Shown in pieces: positions 3,100 to 37,381 of a stretch of DNA of 64,000 nt. The stretch's first letter is position 1; every line of letters begins with the position of its first letter. The stretch is taken from sequence record LC765218.1. One strand, given 5' to 3'. The notes under the pieces are model-generated. The model saw nothing but the letters and a program-made list of their open reading frames with translations. It did no database searches and was not told where the DNA came from. The translations under genes and the position numbers were made by a program.

Positions 3100-3365
3100 T
3101 GGGACTCCGTTACATGGGTTATTCCGTTAAAGCAACTGTGACTGACCGTGAAGGCGAGTCGCATATCTTTGACGGCTTTGCCAAGCCTGGCGAGGGTAAT
3201 TCGGTTTATCCCGGAGCTAATGGAGAAGGTGATAAGCGTCTTGCAGCTCGCCGCGCACTGGAAGCCTTCATGGATAGTCCAGTCTTCGAGGAACTAACAT
3301 CAGATATGTACGATACGTTCGATGTTCGTTTCAATTCTCTTGTGCACACTGGAATGCCGGAGTAA
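3099..3365 (+). CDS. Hypothetical protein (88 aa)
   Basis: TAATG overlap with the previous gene. Confidence 0.8.
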   Translation: MGLRYMGYSVKATVTDREGESHIFDGFAKPGEGNSVYPGANGEGDKRLAARRALEAFMDSPVFEELTSDMYDTFDVRFNSLVHTGMPE

Positions 3366-3370
3366 TAAAA

Positions 3371-3808
3371 ATGTCGATGTATACCAAAGACAACGCTGAA
3401 CTTTACACCCACAAAGAAGATGGTGGTATTTACTACTACCATGGCTTGGCTCATGGTACCGGTGATCAACGTGGAGAACTGTTGCACATCTACAGTGATT
3501 ACTTCACTGACATGATGTACTACCGTAACCACACCTGGTCTACTCGGATGGAACGCGTTTCTGCTCCAGGGCTTCGTCTGAGTCGTTCCTTGCATCCACG
3601 TCTGTGGATCACCACTCTGATCGGTTTGATGATCATTATCATTACTCAGGTTGTTTTCGGCACCGAGTTCAATGCAATCACTCCCCAAGAGATTGTCGGT
3701 ACAGCCGTCGCTGGTGTACTGGCACTGGGTCTTCCGAGTTTCATCCTGCACCAACTGTACAAGTGGAAGTACAAGAAACCTGTTAAACAGAAGTCCGAAG
3801 CGGCATAA
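3371..3808 (+). CDS. Membrane protein: DUF1653-like N-terminal domain plus 2 C-terminal TM helices
   Basis: YTHKEDGGIYYYHGLAH...YYR pattern resembles DUF1653 (from memory); LWITTLIGLMIIIIT and IVGTAVAGVLALGLP are hydrophobic. Confidence 0.7.
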   Translation: MSMYTKDNAELYTHKEDGGIYYYHGLAHGTGDQRGELLHIYSDYFTDMMYYRNHTWSTRMERVSAPGLRLSRSLHPRLWITTLIGLMIIIITQVVFGTEFNAITPQEIVGTAVAGVLALGLPSFILHQLYKWKYKKPVKQKSEAA

Positions 3809-3846
3809 AAGGAAATCCCCATTGGCCGCTAAACCAATGGGGTTCC
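3800..3846 (+). terminator. CATA-arm hairpin element
   Basis: GCGGCATAAAA-GGAAAT-CCCCATTGG-loop-CCAATGGGG-TTCC overlapping the stop codon. Confidence 0.75.
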
Positions 3847-3849
3847 AAA

Positions 3850-3953
3850 CAGTGCATTCGCGACTACACTGTCAGCAGGTGTCGTCCAAGAGAACTGCGG
3901 ATTAGCTACTTACCCCTCGTGGGCATTTTCGCTAGCAGTATTATAACAACACC
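3850..3953 (+). ncRNA. Candidate structured non-coding RNA
   Basis: Nested complementary segments (CAGTG/CACTG; GGTGT/ACACC; ACTGC/GCAGT; TAGC/GCTA; CCC-TCGT-GGG) in a gap with no convincing ORF, bracketed by two hairpin elements; strand assumed. Confidence 0.3.
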
Positions 3954-3970
3954 GTACGTTCTGAAAAGAT

Positions 3971-4007
3971 TAGCCCTCCTGTGCAACCAGGAGGGCTATA
4001 TGTCGTC
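3971..4007. terminator. TATG-arm hairpin element
   Basis: TAGCCCTCCTG-TGCAAC-CAGGAGGGCTA-TATGTCGTC. Confidence 0.75.
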
Positions 4008-4061
4008 AAGTTTAAGCTTGACTTTTTGCCCAAATGGGCCCACTTGCAGAGGAGACTCCTA

Positions 4062-4328
4062 ATGGAAGTCTTTGAAACAAGTTCCAGACCAGATCCCCAC
4101 CACGGGTACTTGACTGGTCTAGAGGTAACAGCATTCAATGGTAAGCCGATCGTCTATGGGCGAAATGAGCAAATCAAAGTTGCTGTATACGATGGTAAGA
4201 TGTTCCTTGGTTACATTGGCAATGGTCAGCTTGTAAGCAAGCTTTCCGATGCTAAATGGATTAACGGATCATCGAACTATCATATCAAGTCTAACTCCAG
4301 TAATCTTTTGTTTACTAGAGCAGCTTAA
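4062..4328 (+). CDS. Hypothetical protein (88 aa, MEVFETSS...)
   Basis: RBS GAGGAG upstream of ATG 4062, in frame with the track ORF 3981..4328. Confidence 0.7.
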   Translation: MEVFETSSRPDPHHGYLTGLEVTAFNGKPIVYGRNEQIKVAVYDGKMFLGYIGNGQLVSKLSDAKWINGSSNYHIKSNSSNLLFTRAA

Positions 4329-7488: not shown

Positions 7489-9714
7489 ATGAAAGACCTT
7501 AAATCTCTGTTCAAAGTGAACGGCGACCGCGACCTGACTCGTTTCTCCATGGAATCCTTCCTTGGTAAACTGGACCTGGAAAAAGACTACGGCGACAGCA
7601 TCCTGTCCGCTGGTAGCAAACTGATTAGTAAGATCGGTCTGGAAAACTTCGGCCAACTGAGCGACGAAGATGCTCAAAGTGCTGCTGGTATGTACGCTAG
7701 CCTGCAAAAAGTTGCCCGTCAGTGTGGCTTCGAATCCTTCGAAGGCGCTAACAGCCGTGTAGGCGAAAACCAACTGTCCGCTGCCACCATGGCTGCCCTG
7801 GCAATGTCCAACTCCACTGAGTACGTTAAGGCTCTGAAACAAGTTGGTAAGAAAATTGCTTCCACTGACAAGAACGTCATTTCGGTTGAACACCGTTTCG
7901 ACGGCCCGGCTGGTTCGATCCAAACTTTCGAAGCTGCTGCTGGCGTCGGTCTGGAAAACTACAACGAGAAATCCCAGCGTGACTTCCGCGTTGTGACCGT
8001 TGGTTATAACCTGGCCGCTTCCCGTCAGGATGAGTTCGCTGAGCGTATCTATCCGACCACCGTTATCAACCCGATTGAAGGTGGTGTTGTTCAGGTTCTT
8101 CCGTACATCGCGGTAATGAAAGACGTTTACCACGCTGTTTCCGGTCAGAAGCTCGACAACCAAGAAGTCAACATGGTTGAAGCCTATCGTGATCCGTCCA
8201 TCCTGGACGACGAGTGCACTGCACTGATCCCGGCTATCGATCCTGCTGGCACTAACCTGAAGTACTTCGCTGATCCGGCTCTGCTGCCTCCGGTAACCGT
8301 TATCAACGAACAAAACATGTCCATCGAAACTGCTCCGCTGAAGCCGGGCGTTAAACTGGACCTGATGGGTAACTCGAACGCCAACCTGCTGATCAACAAA
8401 GGCATGCTGGACATTTCGGATACCATCGATCCGTCGGGCCGCCTGAAGGCTCTGTACGTTAAGTTCCAAGGTAAAGTCATCAAGTTCCAAACTGAACGTC
8501 TGCCGCGCGCAGTGTTCCAGCCGGACCTGGTTGGTGATACCCGCGGTGCCAAGATCGACTTCTGGTCGGATGACCTGACTGTTTCGGCCGTAACCCGCAC
8601 TACTGACGCTGCACAAACTGCTGGCATGAAAGAACTGGAACAACGTAAGTGGGTTCTGCGTCTGAGCATGCAATTCAGTGGTCACATCAGCCTGAGCCGT
8701 GGCGATAGCCGTTTCACCATCGGTGAAGTAACTATCGATCGCATCCTGGACGAAGACAAGCGTCGCATCGACCTGGAAACTGGCGATGGTAAAGCTCTGG
8801 CCGACAGCATTGGCGAAATGGAAATCGTTGGTTTCGACCTCGACACCCGCTTCACCAACACTAACCGCCGTCAGCGTGGTCACCTGCTGCAAACTCGTGC
8901 CCTGCAATTCCGTCACCCGATTCCGATGCATGCTCCGGTTACCCTGCCGCTGAGCACCATGGACGAAGAAGGTCCGGGCGAAGTTGTTAAGGCTCTGACT
9001 GTCAACACCAACATCCGTAACAGCAACAACGCTGTTAAGCGCCTGCTGAACTACCTGGCTCAGCTGAAAGAAGTAACCGCTAACGGTTTCGACCGTCCGC
9101 AGTTCGGTGCTGTTGAAGGTGCTCTGTCCGCAGTAATGCGTCCGACCTACCGCTACAAGAAGCTGCACCTGCCTGACATGATCGACACCCTGAAGTCGCA
9201 AGACCGTTGGGAAGACGTCTGCTCGGCAATCCTGAACGCTGTTAAAGGTGTACTGTTCCCGGCTTACCGTGAATCCAACATCGAAGCAGCTTTCCGCGTG
9301 ATCTCCGGTAACCAAGACGAGCGTCCGATGTTCCTGTTCTGCTCGGACAAAGAGATCGCTAACTACCTGATGACCAAGGGCGACGATCGTACCCTGGGCG
9401 CTTACCTGGAATACGACCTGGTATCGACCAACAACGAACTGTTCGACGGCAAGCTGGTAGTGATTCCGACCCGTAAGACTCCGCAAGAGAACGACATCCT
9501 CAGCTTCGGTCAATTCTACTACGTATCGACCGTAATCGCCGACCTGCCGATCACCCGTGGTGGCCAGCAAGTTACTCGCGAAATCGCTGCGATTCCGTTC
9601 AACCTGCACGTTAACAACATCCCGTTCGCTCTCGAATTCGACGTTACTGGCTTCGAAGAAGTGATGGGTGAGTCTCAGTGGAACAAGCCCCTGGTTGAAG
9701 CCGTAAAAGGTTGA
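7489..9714 (+). CDS. Major capsid protein precursor (phiKZ gp120-like)
   Basis: 741 aa with extreme high-expression codon bias; N-terminal propeptide with repeated S/G-X-E protease sites; size and position match phiKZ gp120. Confidence 0.93.
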   Translation: MKDLKSLFKVNGDRDLTRFSMESFLGKLDLEKDYGDSILSAGSKLISKIGLENFGQLSDEDAQSAAGMYASLQKVARQCGFESFEGANSRVGENQLSAATMAALAMSNSTEYVKALKQVGKKIASTDKNVISVEHRFDGPAGSIQTFEAAAGVGLENYNEKSQRDFRVVTVGYNLAASRQDEFAERIYPTTVINPIEGGVVQVLPYIAVMKDVYHAVSGQKLDNQEVNMVEAYRDPSILDDECTALIPAIDPAGTNLKYFADPALLPPVTVINEQNMSIETAPLKPGVKLDLMGNSNANLLINKGMLDISDTIDPSGRLKALYVKFQGKVIKFQTERLPRAVFQPDLVGDTRGAKIDFWSDDLTVSAVTRTTDAAQTAGMKELEQRKWVLRLSMQFSGHISLSRGDSRFTIGEVTIDRILDEDKRRIDLETGDGKALADSIGEMEIVGFDLDTRFTNTNRRQRGHLLQTRALQFRHPIPMHAPVTLPLSTMDEEGPGEVVKALTVNTNIRNSNNAVKRLLNYLAQLKEVTANGFDRPQFGAVEGALSAVMRPTYRYKKLHLPDMIDTLKSQDRWEDVCSAILNAVKGVLFPAYRESNIEAAFRVISGNQDERPMFLFCSDKEIANYLMTKGDDRTLGAYLEYDLVSTNNELFDGKLVVIPTRKTPQENDILSFGQFYYVSTVIADLPITRGGQQVTREIAAIPFNLHVNNIPFALEFDVTGFEEVMGESQWNKPLVEAVKG

Positions 9715-9798
9715 ACTGGAAAGGGTACCTTCCGTAAGCTTGAAAATGGTACTACCCGTTATCTTGAAGACGGAGTGGCCCGCCGCCTAGAGCGGTAA
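9715..9798 (+). other. Putative stop-codon readthrough extension of the capsid protein (TGKGTFRKLENGTTRYLEDGVARRLER*)
   Basis: 27 in-frame sense codons after TGA; last 21 aa are 11/21 identical, ungapped, to the C-terminus of CDS 36051..36584; no independent start codon or RBS. Confidence 0.7.
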
Positions 9799-9822
9799 AG
9801 CGGAAGTGTTAAGCTGACTGCT

Positions 9823-9864
9823 GGCATAACAGCCTCTACCTTCGGGTAGAGGCTTTATGTCGTC
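9823..9864. terminator. CATA/TATG-arm hairpin terminating the capsid transcript
   Basis: GGCATAAC-AGCCTCTACC-TTCG-GGTAGAGGCT-TTATGTCGTC. Confidence 0.85.
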
Positions 9865-9884
9865 ATTAAAAAATATTTCAAATC

Positions 9885-9892
9885 TATATTAC
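9885..9892 (+). promoter_or_regulatory. Putative early (virion RNAP) promoter TATATTAC
   Basis: Exact phiKZ early motif with an AT-rich upstream tract (AAAAAATATTTCAAATC), heading the unit that contains the nvRNAP subunit. Confidence 0.65.
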
Positions 9893-9930
9893 GGTATTGA
9901 AGAATCATTCCCTAATTAGAGGATCAGACA

Positions 9931-10410
9931 ATGTTCTGGAATACACACGGGCATCATGTTGAGCAAGAGCTCACTGATTCCCAAATGAATCCTGGCGACA
10001 TTGTCGTCATGAAAGAAAATACTACGGTTAGTAATAATACGTCTAACCAAACCAATTCTCAAACCACCACTACTATTCATCCTACCCAGGATGAGAATAT
10101 GTTCCATTTTGCTAATCGCTTCGAGAAGCAAATAAGACATGTTAATATATCCAATGGCCGTTGTTATGAATCGGGAGGTACCCCTGAAGAAAAACAACGT
10201 TCGCGCAACACGCGGAAGGGTAAAGGTAAAACGCGTGTTGCGCATGGGAAACGTGGAGACAGAAATCATAGAGATTCGAAAGCATCCCAAACGAGTCGAT
10301 ATGAACCTAGTCAAGAACGGAGTAGGCCCAAAGGACGTAAAGTAGAAATGGTATTGGATAGGATTGTTTTAAATGGTAAAGATCAACCGTTCCCGTGCGG
10401 GTCATATTGA
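9931..10410 (+). CDS. Hypothetical low-complexity/basic protein (159 aa)
   Basis: RBS GAGGA at good spacing after the early promoter; overlaps a second plausible ORF and the next gene, so its extent is uncertain. Confidence 0.5.
   Translation: MFWNTHGHHVEQELTDSQMNPGDIVVMKENTTVSNNTSNQTNSQTTTTIHPTQDENMFHFANRFEKQIRHVNISNGRCYESGGTPEEKQRSRNTRKGKGKTRVAHGKRGDRNHRDSKASQTSRYEPSQERSRPKGRKVEMVLDRIVLNGKDQPFPCGSY
10139..10345 (+). CDS. Small basic protein in an alternative frame (up to 68 aa)
   Basis: Protein-like sequence (KVKRVLRMGNVETEIIEIRK) ending 27 nt before the next gene; start uncertain. Confidence 0.4.
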   Translation: MLIYPMAVVMNREVPLKKNNVRATRGRVKVKRVLRMGNVETEIIEIRKHPKRVDMNLVKNGVGPKDVK

Positions 10411-27187: not shown

Positions 27188-27511
27188 ATGGCTATGACAG
27201 TATTTCGTGTCGAACTCGATAAGCTGAAAGGCAATATCGGTCAGTTTAATAACATCATTCTCAACCTACTCCGTAGTGCTCGGGATCGTATGAACGCACA
27301 CATCCTTGAAAAAGGTAACGTTCATGGACTTGAGCCTAGAGATATTGGTTTAGGTAATGTCCCTGACTGGCTACCGGCACAGCAAGCACAAGCTAAAGGT
27401 GGAACGAATAACTCTTCGTTCATGACACCTAAACGGGTAGACAACTACGCTGAGGAGAATATCTTCAAAGCGATAGAGAAAGTGTTTAACGACGCTTACG
27501 ATCGTTTGTAA
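27188..27511 (+). CDS. Short gp131-family protein (gp132-like)
   Basis: HILEKGNVHGLEPRDIGLGNVPDW repeat nearly identical to one in the gp131-like gene. Confidence 0.8.
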   Translation: MAMTVFRVELDKLKGNIGQFNNIILNLLRSARDRMNAHILEKGNVHGLEPRDIGLGNVPDWLPAQQAQAKGGTNNSSFMTPKRVDNYAEENIFKAIEKVFNDAYDRL

Positions 27512-27523
27512 CCTACCCTGGCA

Positions 27524-27568
27524 ACGGATGGAATCACTGTGTGTAAAAGCACGGTGGTTCCGTCTTTT
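27524..27568 (+). terminator. Intra-operon hairpin with G-U pairs and a T-tract
   Basis: GGAATCACTGTGT-GTAAAA-GCACGGTGGTTCC (13 bp, three G-U pairs) followed by GTCTTTT. Confidence 0.6.
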
Positions 27569-36050: not shown

Positions 36051-36584
36051 ATGAGCGATCGTTTTCCTTATAACCTCCCGTCTCGTGCGGCACTCTGCCG
36101 TTTGATTCGGGAAACGTCTAAACACAAGAATATTCAGGACGAGTTTGTAAACTTCGAAGATATGTTCTTCAGTCCTACTTCTGGTGTTCCGGGGCGTACT
36201 TATATCGAGATGATCGATAACAAAGCTAGTCTAAAAGACTGGTTCGTTTATCGTCGTCTGGAATTGTCTCACCCTGATTGTCTTGGACCTAATCCGTCTA
36301 TTAAACTATCTGGTGTAGCTACACCTGCGGCCATCGCAGAAGAGATCAACCGTTCCCGTAAGATGACATTCGGTCCGGACGATCTATCCTTCTCTACCAC
36401 TGTCATTAATACCAAAGACGACGTATTCGAATATGAACTCGTTGCAATGACTGGTAGTTACGCCTACTTCGGTTCGACTATCGTTACGATCGAAATGGTT
36501 GAAGGTAACCAATATGCACGTCTACTTGAGGATGGTGGTTATCGTCTAATGGAAGACGGCTTGATTCGTGAGCTGGAACATTAA
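36051..36584 (+). CDS. Virion structural protein (phiKZ gp143 position) with C-terminal RLLEDG repeats
   Basis: Y-R-R-L-E-L family domain; ends RLLEDGGYRLMEDGLIRELEH; TATG at 36005 and RBS GAGG upstream. Confidence 0.8.
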   Translation: MSDRFPYNLPSRAALCRLIRETSKHKNIQDEFVNFEDMFFSPTSGVPGRTYIEMIDNKASLKDWFVYRRLELSHPDCLGPNPSIKLSGVATPAAIAEEINRSRKMTFGPDDLSFSTTVINTKDDVFEYELVAMTGSYAYFGSTIVTIEMVEGNQYARLLEDGGYRLMEDGLIRELEH

Positions 36585-36601
36585 TTACTGGAGACAGACA
36601 A

Positions 36602-37381
36602 ATGGGTACTGTACTCAAACGTGGCGACCGCGGCTCTGCTGTGGAAGATCTACAAATGAAACTTCGAGTCGCAGGATACGCAGTTAGCGCTGACGGAATC
36701 TTCGGTGGAGATACAGAGAAAGCTGTTCGTGATTTCCAAGCTTCTAAAGCTTTGGTGGTTGACGGAAAAGTTGGACCTGCTACTCTAGCTGAACTAGCCA
36801 AATCCGCTACTGTTCCTGCTAAATGGGAAGCTATCCCTTTCCCAACAGCTAATAAATCTCGGTCGGCTGCAATGCCCACACTGAATGCGGTTGGAGCAAT
36901 GACTGGTACCGATCCTCGGTTACTCGCTACATTCGCTTCCATTGAGTCTGCTTTTGATTACACTGTCAAAGCATCCACATCTTCGGCTACTGGTTGGTTC
37001 CAGTTCCTTGATGCTACATGGGATGACATGATCAAAGCACATGGTTCCAAATACGGGCTACCTAAAGATCCCACTAGGGCACTCCGTAAAGACCCACGTG
37101 CAAATGCATTAATGGGTGCAGAATTCCTTAAAGGAAATGCAGCTGTATTACGTCCAGTAATCAATCGCGAACCGAGTGATACAGACTTGTATTTGGCACA
37201 TTTCCTTGGTGCTGGCGGCGCTAAGAAATTCCTATCCGCAGATCAGAAAACTCTCGGTGAAGTTCTATTCCCGAAACCTGCTAAAGCAAACCCGTCGATC
37301 TTTAGCAATAAAGGTGTACCACGTACCCTTGCAGAGATCTACAAGCTGTTCGAAGATAAAGTTTCGAAACATCGGGCATAG
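36602..37381 (+). CDS. Modular endolysin: peptidoglycan-binding domain plus lytic transglycosylase (phiKZ gp144-like)
   Basis: LKRGDRG...DGIFG...DGKVGPAT PG-binding repeats; FASIESAF catalytic Glu, SATGWFQFL and YLAHFLG motifs as in gp144. Confidence 0.95.
   Translation: MGTVLKRGDRGSAVEDLQMKLRVAGYAVSADGIFGGDTEKAVRDFQASKALVVDGKVGPATLAELAKSATVPAKWEAIPFPTANKSRSAAMPTLNAVGAMTGTDPRLLATFASIESAFDYTVKASTSSATGWFQFLDATWDDMIKAHGSKYGLPKDPTRALRKDPRANALMGAEFLKGNAAVLRPVINREPSDTDLYLAHFLGAGGAKKFLSADQKTLGEVLFPKPAKANPSIFSNKGVPRTLAEIYKLFEDKVSKHRA

Follow-up and report, generated by a model that had tools for sequence, protein, structure and literature searches.

A conserved peptide in frame behind the UGA stop of the phiKZ-like major capsid gene: a case for programmed low-level readthrough

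Introduction

Does the major capsid protein of the phiKZ-like jumbo phages always end where its stop codon says that it ends? The question is raised by Pseudomonas phage BRkr, a phiKZ-like Pawinskivirus with a whole genome of 306 kb, and in particular by the capsid gene lying in the 64,000-nucleotide stretch of record LC765218.1 analysed here (hereafter the window, to whose positions coordinates refer unless another piece is named). The gene stops at a TGA, behind which the same reading frame stays open and ends in a short repeated motif. An initial annotation had proposed that this UGA is read through, and that a fraction of the capsid subunits thereby carries a C-terminal tag which docks another virion component. 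Comparative genomics lends strong support to the first of these proposals, and I consider programmed, low-efficiency UGA readthrough of the capsid stop the probable explanation of the locus (probability roughly 0.8).

The same arrangement is found in phiKZ, PhiPA3 and 201phi2-1, the main models of nucleus-forming jumbo phages, and for phiKZ near-atomic capsid structures and whole-virion structures are available. Annotations, PDB entries and searchable papers all take the TGA to be the end of the capsid protein, and no mention of an extension was found in any of them. Literature searches for gp120 readthrough, for phiKZ ribosome profiling and for the peptide strings likewise returned no report.

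Results and Discussion

The capsid gene and the open frame behind its stop

The elements of the locus are as follows.
7489..9711, + strand: coding region of the major capsid protein, 741 codons, homologue of phiKZ gp120 (Pfam PhiKZ_MCP; PDB 8y6v).
9712..9714, + strand: conserved TGA stop, proposed to be leaky (TGA in 25 of 25 distinct extension-bearing relatives).
9715..9795, + strand: 27-codon in-frame extension, TGKGTFRKLENGTTRYLEDGVARRLER, kept as a peptide, with synonymous codon variety.
9733..9795, + strand: three-octad tail motif R..E.G.. / R..E.G.. / R.LE., here RKLENGTT-RYLEDGVA-RRLER, of the C-terminal tail family.
9796..9798, + strand: TAA closing the extended form.

The open reading frame (ORF) at 7489..9714, annotated in LC765218.1 as a hypothetical protein of 741 amino acids (aa), matches the Pfam family PhiKZ_MCP with an E-value (E) of 7.9e-231, and its C-terminal 99 residues match gp120 of PDB 8y6v (E 1e-49). 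The region 9300-10000 is 95-99.9% identical to the Pawinskivirus phages PS119XW, PA1C, phiHQ and HPP-Temi, and all 68 records that match it are Pseudomonas phages of the phiKZ group.

The initial annotation had described this gene as ending GGT-TGA-ACT among neighbours that mostly end in TAA, and this description is accurate: the stops of the 57 window ORFs of at least 100 aa are TAA in 36 cases, TGA in 11 and TAG in 10. After the TGA, frame 0 is open for 27 sense codons, TGKGTFRKLENGTTRYLEDGVARRLER, until the TAA at 9796-9798, as had been stated. The extension has no ATG and no visible ribosome-binding site, again as described, the sole in-frame ATG, GTG or TTG being a GTG at codon 21. Its last 21 residues indeed match the C-terminal end of the ORF at 36051-36584 (RLLEDGGYRLMEDGLIRELEH) in a gap-free alignment that reaches both stops in one register, with 11 of 21 residues identical. 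In all six frames of the window the tandem motif [RK]x[LIMV]E[DN]G occurs in these two places only, each copy beginning 21 residues ahead of a stop, and a looser version of the motif finds the same two places only in the six frames of the 306-kb genome.

It is the relatives, and not BRkr alone, that give this open frame its significance. In the record of HPP-Temi (1869-2012 of the retrieved piece), a 47-aa hypothetical protein is annotated out of frame over the end of the capsid gene and the extension; here the lack of an annotated extension has probably misled the gene caller.

Conservation of the stop and of the peptide

The 3' end and downstream DNA of the capsid gene were aligned for BRkr, HPP-Temi, Phabio and phiKZ, and the post-stop frame was read in eight phages, in 33 IMG/VR contigs retrieved with a capsid C-terminal profile, and in 201phi2-1. 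The initial annotation had suggested looking behind the capsid stops of relatives for a conserved stop and peptide, and both were found there. The resulting extension set comprises 28 loci, corresponding to 24 distinct nucleotide sequences, or 25 with 201phi2-1, and spans at least six genera or lineages. The combination of TGA and in-frame extension was seen in BRkr, HPP-Temi, Phabio, phiKZ, D6, RVTF4, Noxifer and 201phi2-1, as well as in PhiPA3, Psa21, PA7 and 17 further IMG/VR contigs. All capsid genes at least 80% identical to that of BRkr have the TGA and then the peptide, as do several at 62-74% identity.

Across the 25 distinct relatives the extension is 24-30 residues long and takes the form x3-G-x2-R..E.G..R..E.G..(x)R..E, ending in TAA, TAG or TGA at 20-24 residues past the first Arg of the motif. 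Representative extensions are those of phiKZ (AGKGYRYLENGTIRYLEDGNARKLEE), PhiPA3 (AGKGTLRYMENGNVRYLEDGVARRLDTPVI), 201phi2-1 (TGKGGFRYMEDGTTVRYEESGIARRLER), Phabio (TGKGTFRTLEDGTRRTLQDGQARLLE), D6 (RNPGIVRRYEDGTIRYFEDGTTQRYLEA) and Noxifer (LPAAPSSRKFEDGSLRSTEGGVPRTLES).

Ten contigs of the same wider clade, with 62-74% capsid identity, have a TAA capsid stop and no extension; in the three of these that were inspected the extension is deleted and the terminator hairpin lies 24-44 nucleotides (nt) past the stop. More distant capsid genes (SPN3US-like, Deimos-Minion and Xanthomonas phage RTH11) also end in TAA with no peptide behind them. A sense codon in place of the TGA was seen at none of 40 loci, and no database protein bridges the junction, the protein search having given two candidates only. 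That TGA is the only codon seen directly ahead of the tail, to the exclusion of TAA, TAG and any sense codon, argues that both forms of the protein are needed.

These comparisons bear on another explanation of the locus, in which the stop is a recent nonsense mutation or a sequencing error, or the peptide is a tolerated and functionless product of basal readthrough. UGA leaks basally in bacteria in any case and no stimulatory element was found, both of which would suit such a leftover. However, TGA and peptide are kept together across lineages that are near synonymous saturation (proportion of synonymous differences, pS, 0.64), the motif residues are invariant, and the change of TGA to TAA went along with deletion of the extension, not with its decay. 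I therefore regard a leftover or error as improbable, and the scenarios that the initial annotation had named as fatal to its proposal (sequencing error, private nonsense mutation, unconserved peptide) are excluded by the 25 distinct relatives.

Two distant capsid genes also end in TGA and continue in frame: that of Serratia phage PCH45 (1337-1489 of its piece) for 49 open codons, and that of Ralstonia phage RP12 for 15. Neither an R..E.G motif nor a Pfam match was found in the two continuations.

Selection on the extension

The pattern of substitution indicates that the extension is conserved at the protein level. The invariant Arg, Glu and Gly columns are each encoded by 2-5 synonymous codons: the first Arg by CGT, CGA, CGC, CGG and AGG, both Gly columns by all four codons, and Glu by GAA and GAG. 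Mean pairwise diversity at codon positions 1, 2 and 3 is 0.42, 0.41 and 0.55, and the ratio of non-synonymous to synonymous proportions of differences (pN/pS) is 0.61 in frame 0, compared to 0.88 and 1.07 for the same alignment in the shifted frames. Between closely related sequences, the four nucleotide differences that separate the extensions of BRkr and HPP-Temi are all synonymous (4 synonymous, 0 non-synonymous), and close pairs of the D6 group differ by 6 synonymous and 2 non-synonymous changes, and by 2 and 0. The spacer between the TGA and the first Arg codon measures 15, 18, 21 or 24 nt, so that every indel is a multiple of three and the motif never leaves frame 0, and stops interrupt frames +1 and +2 in almost all sequences. 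A frameshift of the T7 10B type was rejected on these grounds.

The same alignment addresses the idea that the peptide is a separate small protein, started downstream of the capsid stop from its own small ORF or by reinitiation. The region does lie on an abundant late capsid mRNA upstream of a terminator hairpin, and some relatives have a GTG, TTG or ATG within the extension. However, an in-frame ATG, GTG or TTG is wholly missing from 14 of the 24 sequences, and in the others the candidate start falls anywhere from codon 9 to codon 29, within or past the motif and at no conserved position, with no ribosome-binding site visible. Since most sequences have no in-frame start and none is conserved, an independently initiated small ORF is ruled out. 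An independent ORF would also not need to keep the capsid frame across four spacer lengths, and a separate protein is, altogether, very improbable.

Alternatively, the stretch could act as a nucleic-acid element (a structure in the 3' untranslated region, a small RNA or a DNA site) in which the frame is incidental. Its position between a highly expressed gene and a terminator, and the nucleotide conservation of parts of it among close relatives, would be in keeping with this. Against it stand the variation at third positions and the many codons used for each invariant residue, and a consensus fold of 14 diverse sequences computed with RNAalifold gave no structure (-0.64 kcal/mol, no supported covariation or helix). 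Furthermore, the same motif ends dozens of unrelated phage proteins, and only the downstream hairpin and promoter-like module repeats in the genome. Such an element is extremely improbable as an explanation.

In the absence of a conserved fold, a readthrough-stimulating stem, a selenocysteine insertion sequence (SECIS) element and the small hairpin noted in the initial annotation are all unsupported. The last of these (GGAAAGG-GTA-CCTTCC, 9718-9733) is present in the BRkr sequence as described, but it is missing from the minimum-energy fold, is not conserved, and has no evident role.

Proposed decoding of the UGA

Dedicated recoding of the UGA, as selenocysteine, by a phage suppressor tRNA, or as a sense codon, is suggested by the stop being always UGA, which is the codon of selenocysteine and of Trp and Gly reassignment. 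A SECIS or other RNA structure behind the UGA was rejected, as no hairpin is conserved there (consensus fold of 14 sequences, above). A phage suppressor tRNA was rejected by a tRNA scan of the whole BRkr genome, which gave seven tRNAs (Thr-tgt, Leu-tag, Tyr-gta, Asn-gtt, Met-cat, Pro-tgg and Leu-taa) and neither a suppressor with anticodon TCA nor a Trp tRNA. Reassignment of the code was rejected from stop-codon usage: TGA ends 11 of the 57 long window ORFs, and behind the ten other than the capsid gene the open tails are short and without motif, so that TGA is an ordinary terminator for these and the genetic code is the standard one. Dedicated recoding thus has only the slightest probability.

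With a standard code and no phage tRNA to read UGA, decoding must rest on a near-cognate host tRNA. In E. coli and in Qbeta this near-cognate reader of UGA is tRNA-Trp. UGA is the leakiest of the stop codons, and in E. coli UGA followed by U is the strongest UGA terminator, UGA-A and UGA-C being the weakest. Across the 25 sequences, which are related to one another, an A stands directly 3' of the capsid TGA in 19 cases, a G in 5, a C in 1 and a T in none; among the 11 TGA stops of the window, the capsid gene's own TGA-A counted, 5 have a T next. The avoidance of T fits selection for a weak stop, within the limit set by the kinship of the sequences.

The tail as a family

The motif is not confined to the two BRkr proteins. 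IMG/VR was scanned with a DNA pattern encoding R..EDG..R..EDG, which gave 87 exact matches, where by estimate few are expected by chance, and 64 of these begin 19-24 residues before a stop codon. The 55 distinct tails yield the consensus R-[LI]-[TL]-E-D-G-x-x-R-[LIY]-[TL]-E-D-G-x-x-R-x-L-E-(x)-stop, with a third Arg in 43 of 55 and a third Glu in 39 of 55, both in register, although the pattern required neither.

The carriers include J-like tail-tip proteins of 650-880 aa (PHROGs 1101, 6284, 21247 and 4271; Pfam Phage-tail_3 and Rcc01698_C), for which 8rk3 ('Tip attachment protein J') and 8vjh ('minor tail protein') are the relatives of solved structure. Further carriers are tail and virion proteins of PHROGs 6305, 20680 and 384, and the gp143 family, which is PHROG 2935 and to which the second BRkr protein belongs. 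No Pfam model for the tail was found, no PDB chain matches it, whether searched with a single peptide or with a 39-sequence profile, and the literature searched contains no description of the family.

The BRkr capsid extension has the architecture and register of the family tails, its motif starting 21 residues before the TAA. By these shared features it is one instance of a widespread, portable C-terminal tail on phage virion proteins. As in the BRkr extension, the tails of the J-like tail-tip proteins and of gp143/PHROG 2935 place the three-octad motif at the extreme C-terminus, with the stop 19-24 residues past the first Arg; they are read in the ordinary frame, whereas the tails of the phiKZ-like capsid proteins alone lie behind a stop codon. 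Because the same tail ends many unrelated phage virion proteins, the docking to another virion component put forward in the initial annotation becomes more plausible.

One contig carries two such proteins side by side: in IMGVR_UViG_3300037076_000106, positions 3310-4180, adjacent ORFs of 323 and 292 aa each have repeats of R-I-T-E-D-G close to the C-terminus. The phiKZ-like phages are therefore not alone in having more than one tail-bearing protein per phage.

A proposed tailed isoform of the capsid protein

From the comparisons above I infer that the extension is translated, as follows. Most ribosomes would stop at 9712-9714 and release the normal capsid protein of 741 aa. In a minority, a near-cognate host tRNA would read the UGA, the inserted residue expected to be Trp by analogy with Qbeta and E. 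coli, and these ribosomes would add the 27 codons up to the UAA at 9796-9798, giving an isoform of 769 aa that would co-assemble into the T=27 shell. Its tail of three R-x-x-E-x-G octads would most likely serve as a binding tag for some partner.

The phiKZ capsid structure suggests where such a tail would sit. At each hexamer axis, the final 20 residues of the gp120 copies make up a six-helix bundle that surrounds a ~9 Å pore, and in the pentamers the gp120 C-termini swing out and touch the external decoration protein gp244 (PMC11297242). The readthrough tail therefore probably starts on the capsomer axis, facing outward, and would emerge at the capsomer centres, probably on the shell's outer face. 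With six C-termini crowding each hexamer axis, a tail on every one would be likely to upset the bundle. This would account for a stop that is retained, would let only a few percent of ribosomes pass and has not given way to a sense codon.

Several observations count against readthrough, or at least limit it. An open frame is in itself unremarkable, 15 of the 57 long window ORFs being followed by at least 27 open codons past their stop. The pN/pS of 0.61 is not very low, although the comparisons are saturated (pS 0.64) and the first six residues are a variable linker. No conserved readthrough-stimulating RNA element was detected by RNAalifold among the 14 sequences, and the efficiency may thus be that of the basal UGA leak only. 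In PDB 8y6v, gp120 has 747 residues, and two phiKZ cryo-electron microscopy (cryo-EM) papers contain nothing further; a rare flexible tail would be averaged out of cryo-EM maps. The tail of the gp143 homologue is kept in two contigs whose capsid gene ends in TAA with no extension. Finally, simple UGA leakiness does not explain a related contig in which an open frame follows a TAA capsid stop (IMGVR_UViG_3300037502_002993, described below), and readthrough of TAA would be unusual.

Were the readthrough isoform to exist, it would be a conserved and hidden component of the virion, present by estimate in tens of copies per capsid at 1-5% readthrough. To my knowledge it would be the first capsid extension by stop-codon readthrough in a tailed double-stranded DNA (dsDNA) phage. 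It would also provide an entry point to the widespread tail motif on tail-tip and virion proteins, and would bear on phage engineering, for which the capsid C-terminus is a natural display site. For genome annotation, the implication is that gene callers miss this extension.

Comparison with known systems

The closest parallel is the A1 protein of phage Qbeta, in which the leaky UGA of the capsid gene is read by a host tRNA at low frequency to give a minor, C-terminally extended virion subunit. Both cases have an in-frame extension behind a capsid UGA. They differ in that BRkr is a dsDNA jumbo phage with an HK97-fold capsid, that there is no sequence kinship, and that the extension has 24-30 residues as opposed to 196 in Qbeta; nor was any stimulatory context identified here, save for the absence of U after the stop.

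In T7 (gp10B), Lactobacillus phage A2 (gp5B) and Listeria phage PSA (Cps-L), recoding at the 3' end of the capsid gene yields a fixed minority of longer subunits. This proceeds by a -1 or +1 frameshift at a slippery site into another frame, whereas the BRkr extension is in frame behind a stop. What would be new relative to these systems is stop-codon readthrough in a tailed dsDNA jumbo phage, together with a tiny repeat tail of an apparently undescribed family.

The gp143 homologue, the second tail carrier

The only other BRkr protein with the same tail is encoded further downstream in the window.
36051..36584, + strand: homologue of phiKZ gp143, 177 aa (PHROG 2935 'virion structural protein', E 7e-43).
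36519..36581, + strand: its tail, RLLEDGGY-RLMEDGLI-RELEH, with the three Arg invariant.

The three Arg of this tail are invariant in 28 gp143 family members. As in the phiKZ lysis cassette, the gene lies directly upstream of a gp144-type endolysin of 259 aa (36051-37381 for the pair). In phiKZ, gp143 is part of the lysis cassette and is described as a cytoplasmic, holin-specific lysis regulator, non-essential by transposon sequencing (PMC12894885; PMC12676376), which regulates the holin gp142. The record of its 201phi2-1 homologue, gp228, lists it among the virion proteins on the strength of mass spectrometry.

An AlphaFold2 model of the BRkr homologue has a confidence (pLDDT) of 84, with a confident core, falling to 65-71 in the tail, where isolated beta-bridges recur with a period of eight residues. 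The low confidence and the regular bridges suggest that the tail is a segment which becomes ordered on a partner. The best fold match of the model is a chain in the outer periphery of the phiKZ baseplate (9xqd, E 3.7e-7, 12% identity), and at the sequence level 9gb2_M, a baseplate 'triplex' protein, is matched weakly. These hints of a place in the baseplate or virion conflict with the published cytoplasmic role in lysis regulation (PMC12894885).

A strict pairing of the two tails was rejected, as the two contigs noted above keep the gp143 tail but have no capsid extension, so the two tails are not strictly co-inherited. BRkr would carry the tail only on its gp143 homologue and on the readthrough capsid isoform; the holin gp142 is under the control of gp143 in phiKZ, and virions of 201phi2-1 contain the gp143 homologue. 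This leads to the idea, speculative and rather unlikely, that the tail is a shared address tag which ties capsid output to lysis: through mutual binding or a common partner, capsids could titrate or load gp143 and thereby time lysis. More broadly, the same idea would make the tail a new class of portable docking tag, attached either directly or by recoding (readthrough here, and possibly a -1 frameshift in one of the contigs described below).

The downstream hairpin module and possible related recoding in other contigs

One further feature closes the capsid locus.
9823..9861, + strand: strong terminator-like hairpin, GCAUAAC-AGCCUCUACC-UUCG-GGUAGAGGCU-UUAUGU, identified by folding, 108 nt past the TGA and 24 nt past the TAA.

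These distances, already given in the initial annotation, were borne out by the fold. An equivalent hairpin is found 3' of the extension stop in every relative, and directly 3' of the capsid stop where the extension is deleted. In BRkr the hairpin belongs to a module, CATAA(A)GCC...GGCTTTATG followed by AAATCTATATTAC (window 9823-9892), which occurs at many places of the genome (e.g., 27474-27541 of another retrieved piece), and the element AAATCTATATTAC (9880-9892) shows no variation among BRkr, HPP-Temi, Phabio and phiKZ. The repeated unit resembles a terminator followed by a promoter-like element. A second genomic BLAST match of the extension region proved to be this module and not the extension. 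Behind many BRkr genes the hairpin begins 0-3 nt past the stop, and the post-stop translation there reads RHKAP...

Three contigs show other continuations behind or across a stop. In IMGVR_UViG_3300043122_000192 (L029; 2125-2739), the capsid protein ends in a Gly/Thr/Pro linker and a TGA, followed by 203 open residues with a Big_2 Ig-like domain from residue 4 (Pfam E 4e-9); as there is an ATG at codon 3, this may be either readthrough or a separate gene. In IMGVR_UViG_3300037502_002993 (L034, also L126; 2140-2430), a Pro/Glu linker of the capsid protein and a TAA are followed by 95 in-frame residues, comprising a Big_2 domain from residue 2 and then RLTEDGEMRTTEDGTPRYSEL and a stop, with no start codon ahead of the domain. 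In IMGVR_UViG_3300022918_000013 (L135; 3738-4205), the end of a 131-aa fn3-like ORF (...IALPGEL-stop) is overlapped in the -1 frame by the tail ITARLLEDGAGRYLEDGAVRNLEG, which stands beside CCGGGGGAG, a run of G, with a 441-aa fibre-like ORF just downstream. The tail lacks a start codon and may be added by a -1 frameshift.

Ig-like domains are reportedly added to phage structural proteins by recoding, a finding attributed to Fraser et al. in 2006. The two related contigs L029 and L034 are similar in having Big_2 directly behind the capsid stop, with the same tail following in one of them, whereas the module of BRkr and phiKZ is a 21-residue repeat tail and no folded Ig domain. L029, L034 and L135 are reminiscent of the known tendency of phages to extend structural proteins with accessory modules through recoding.

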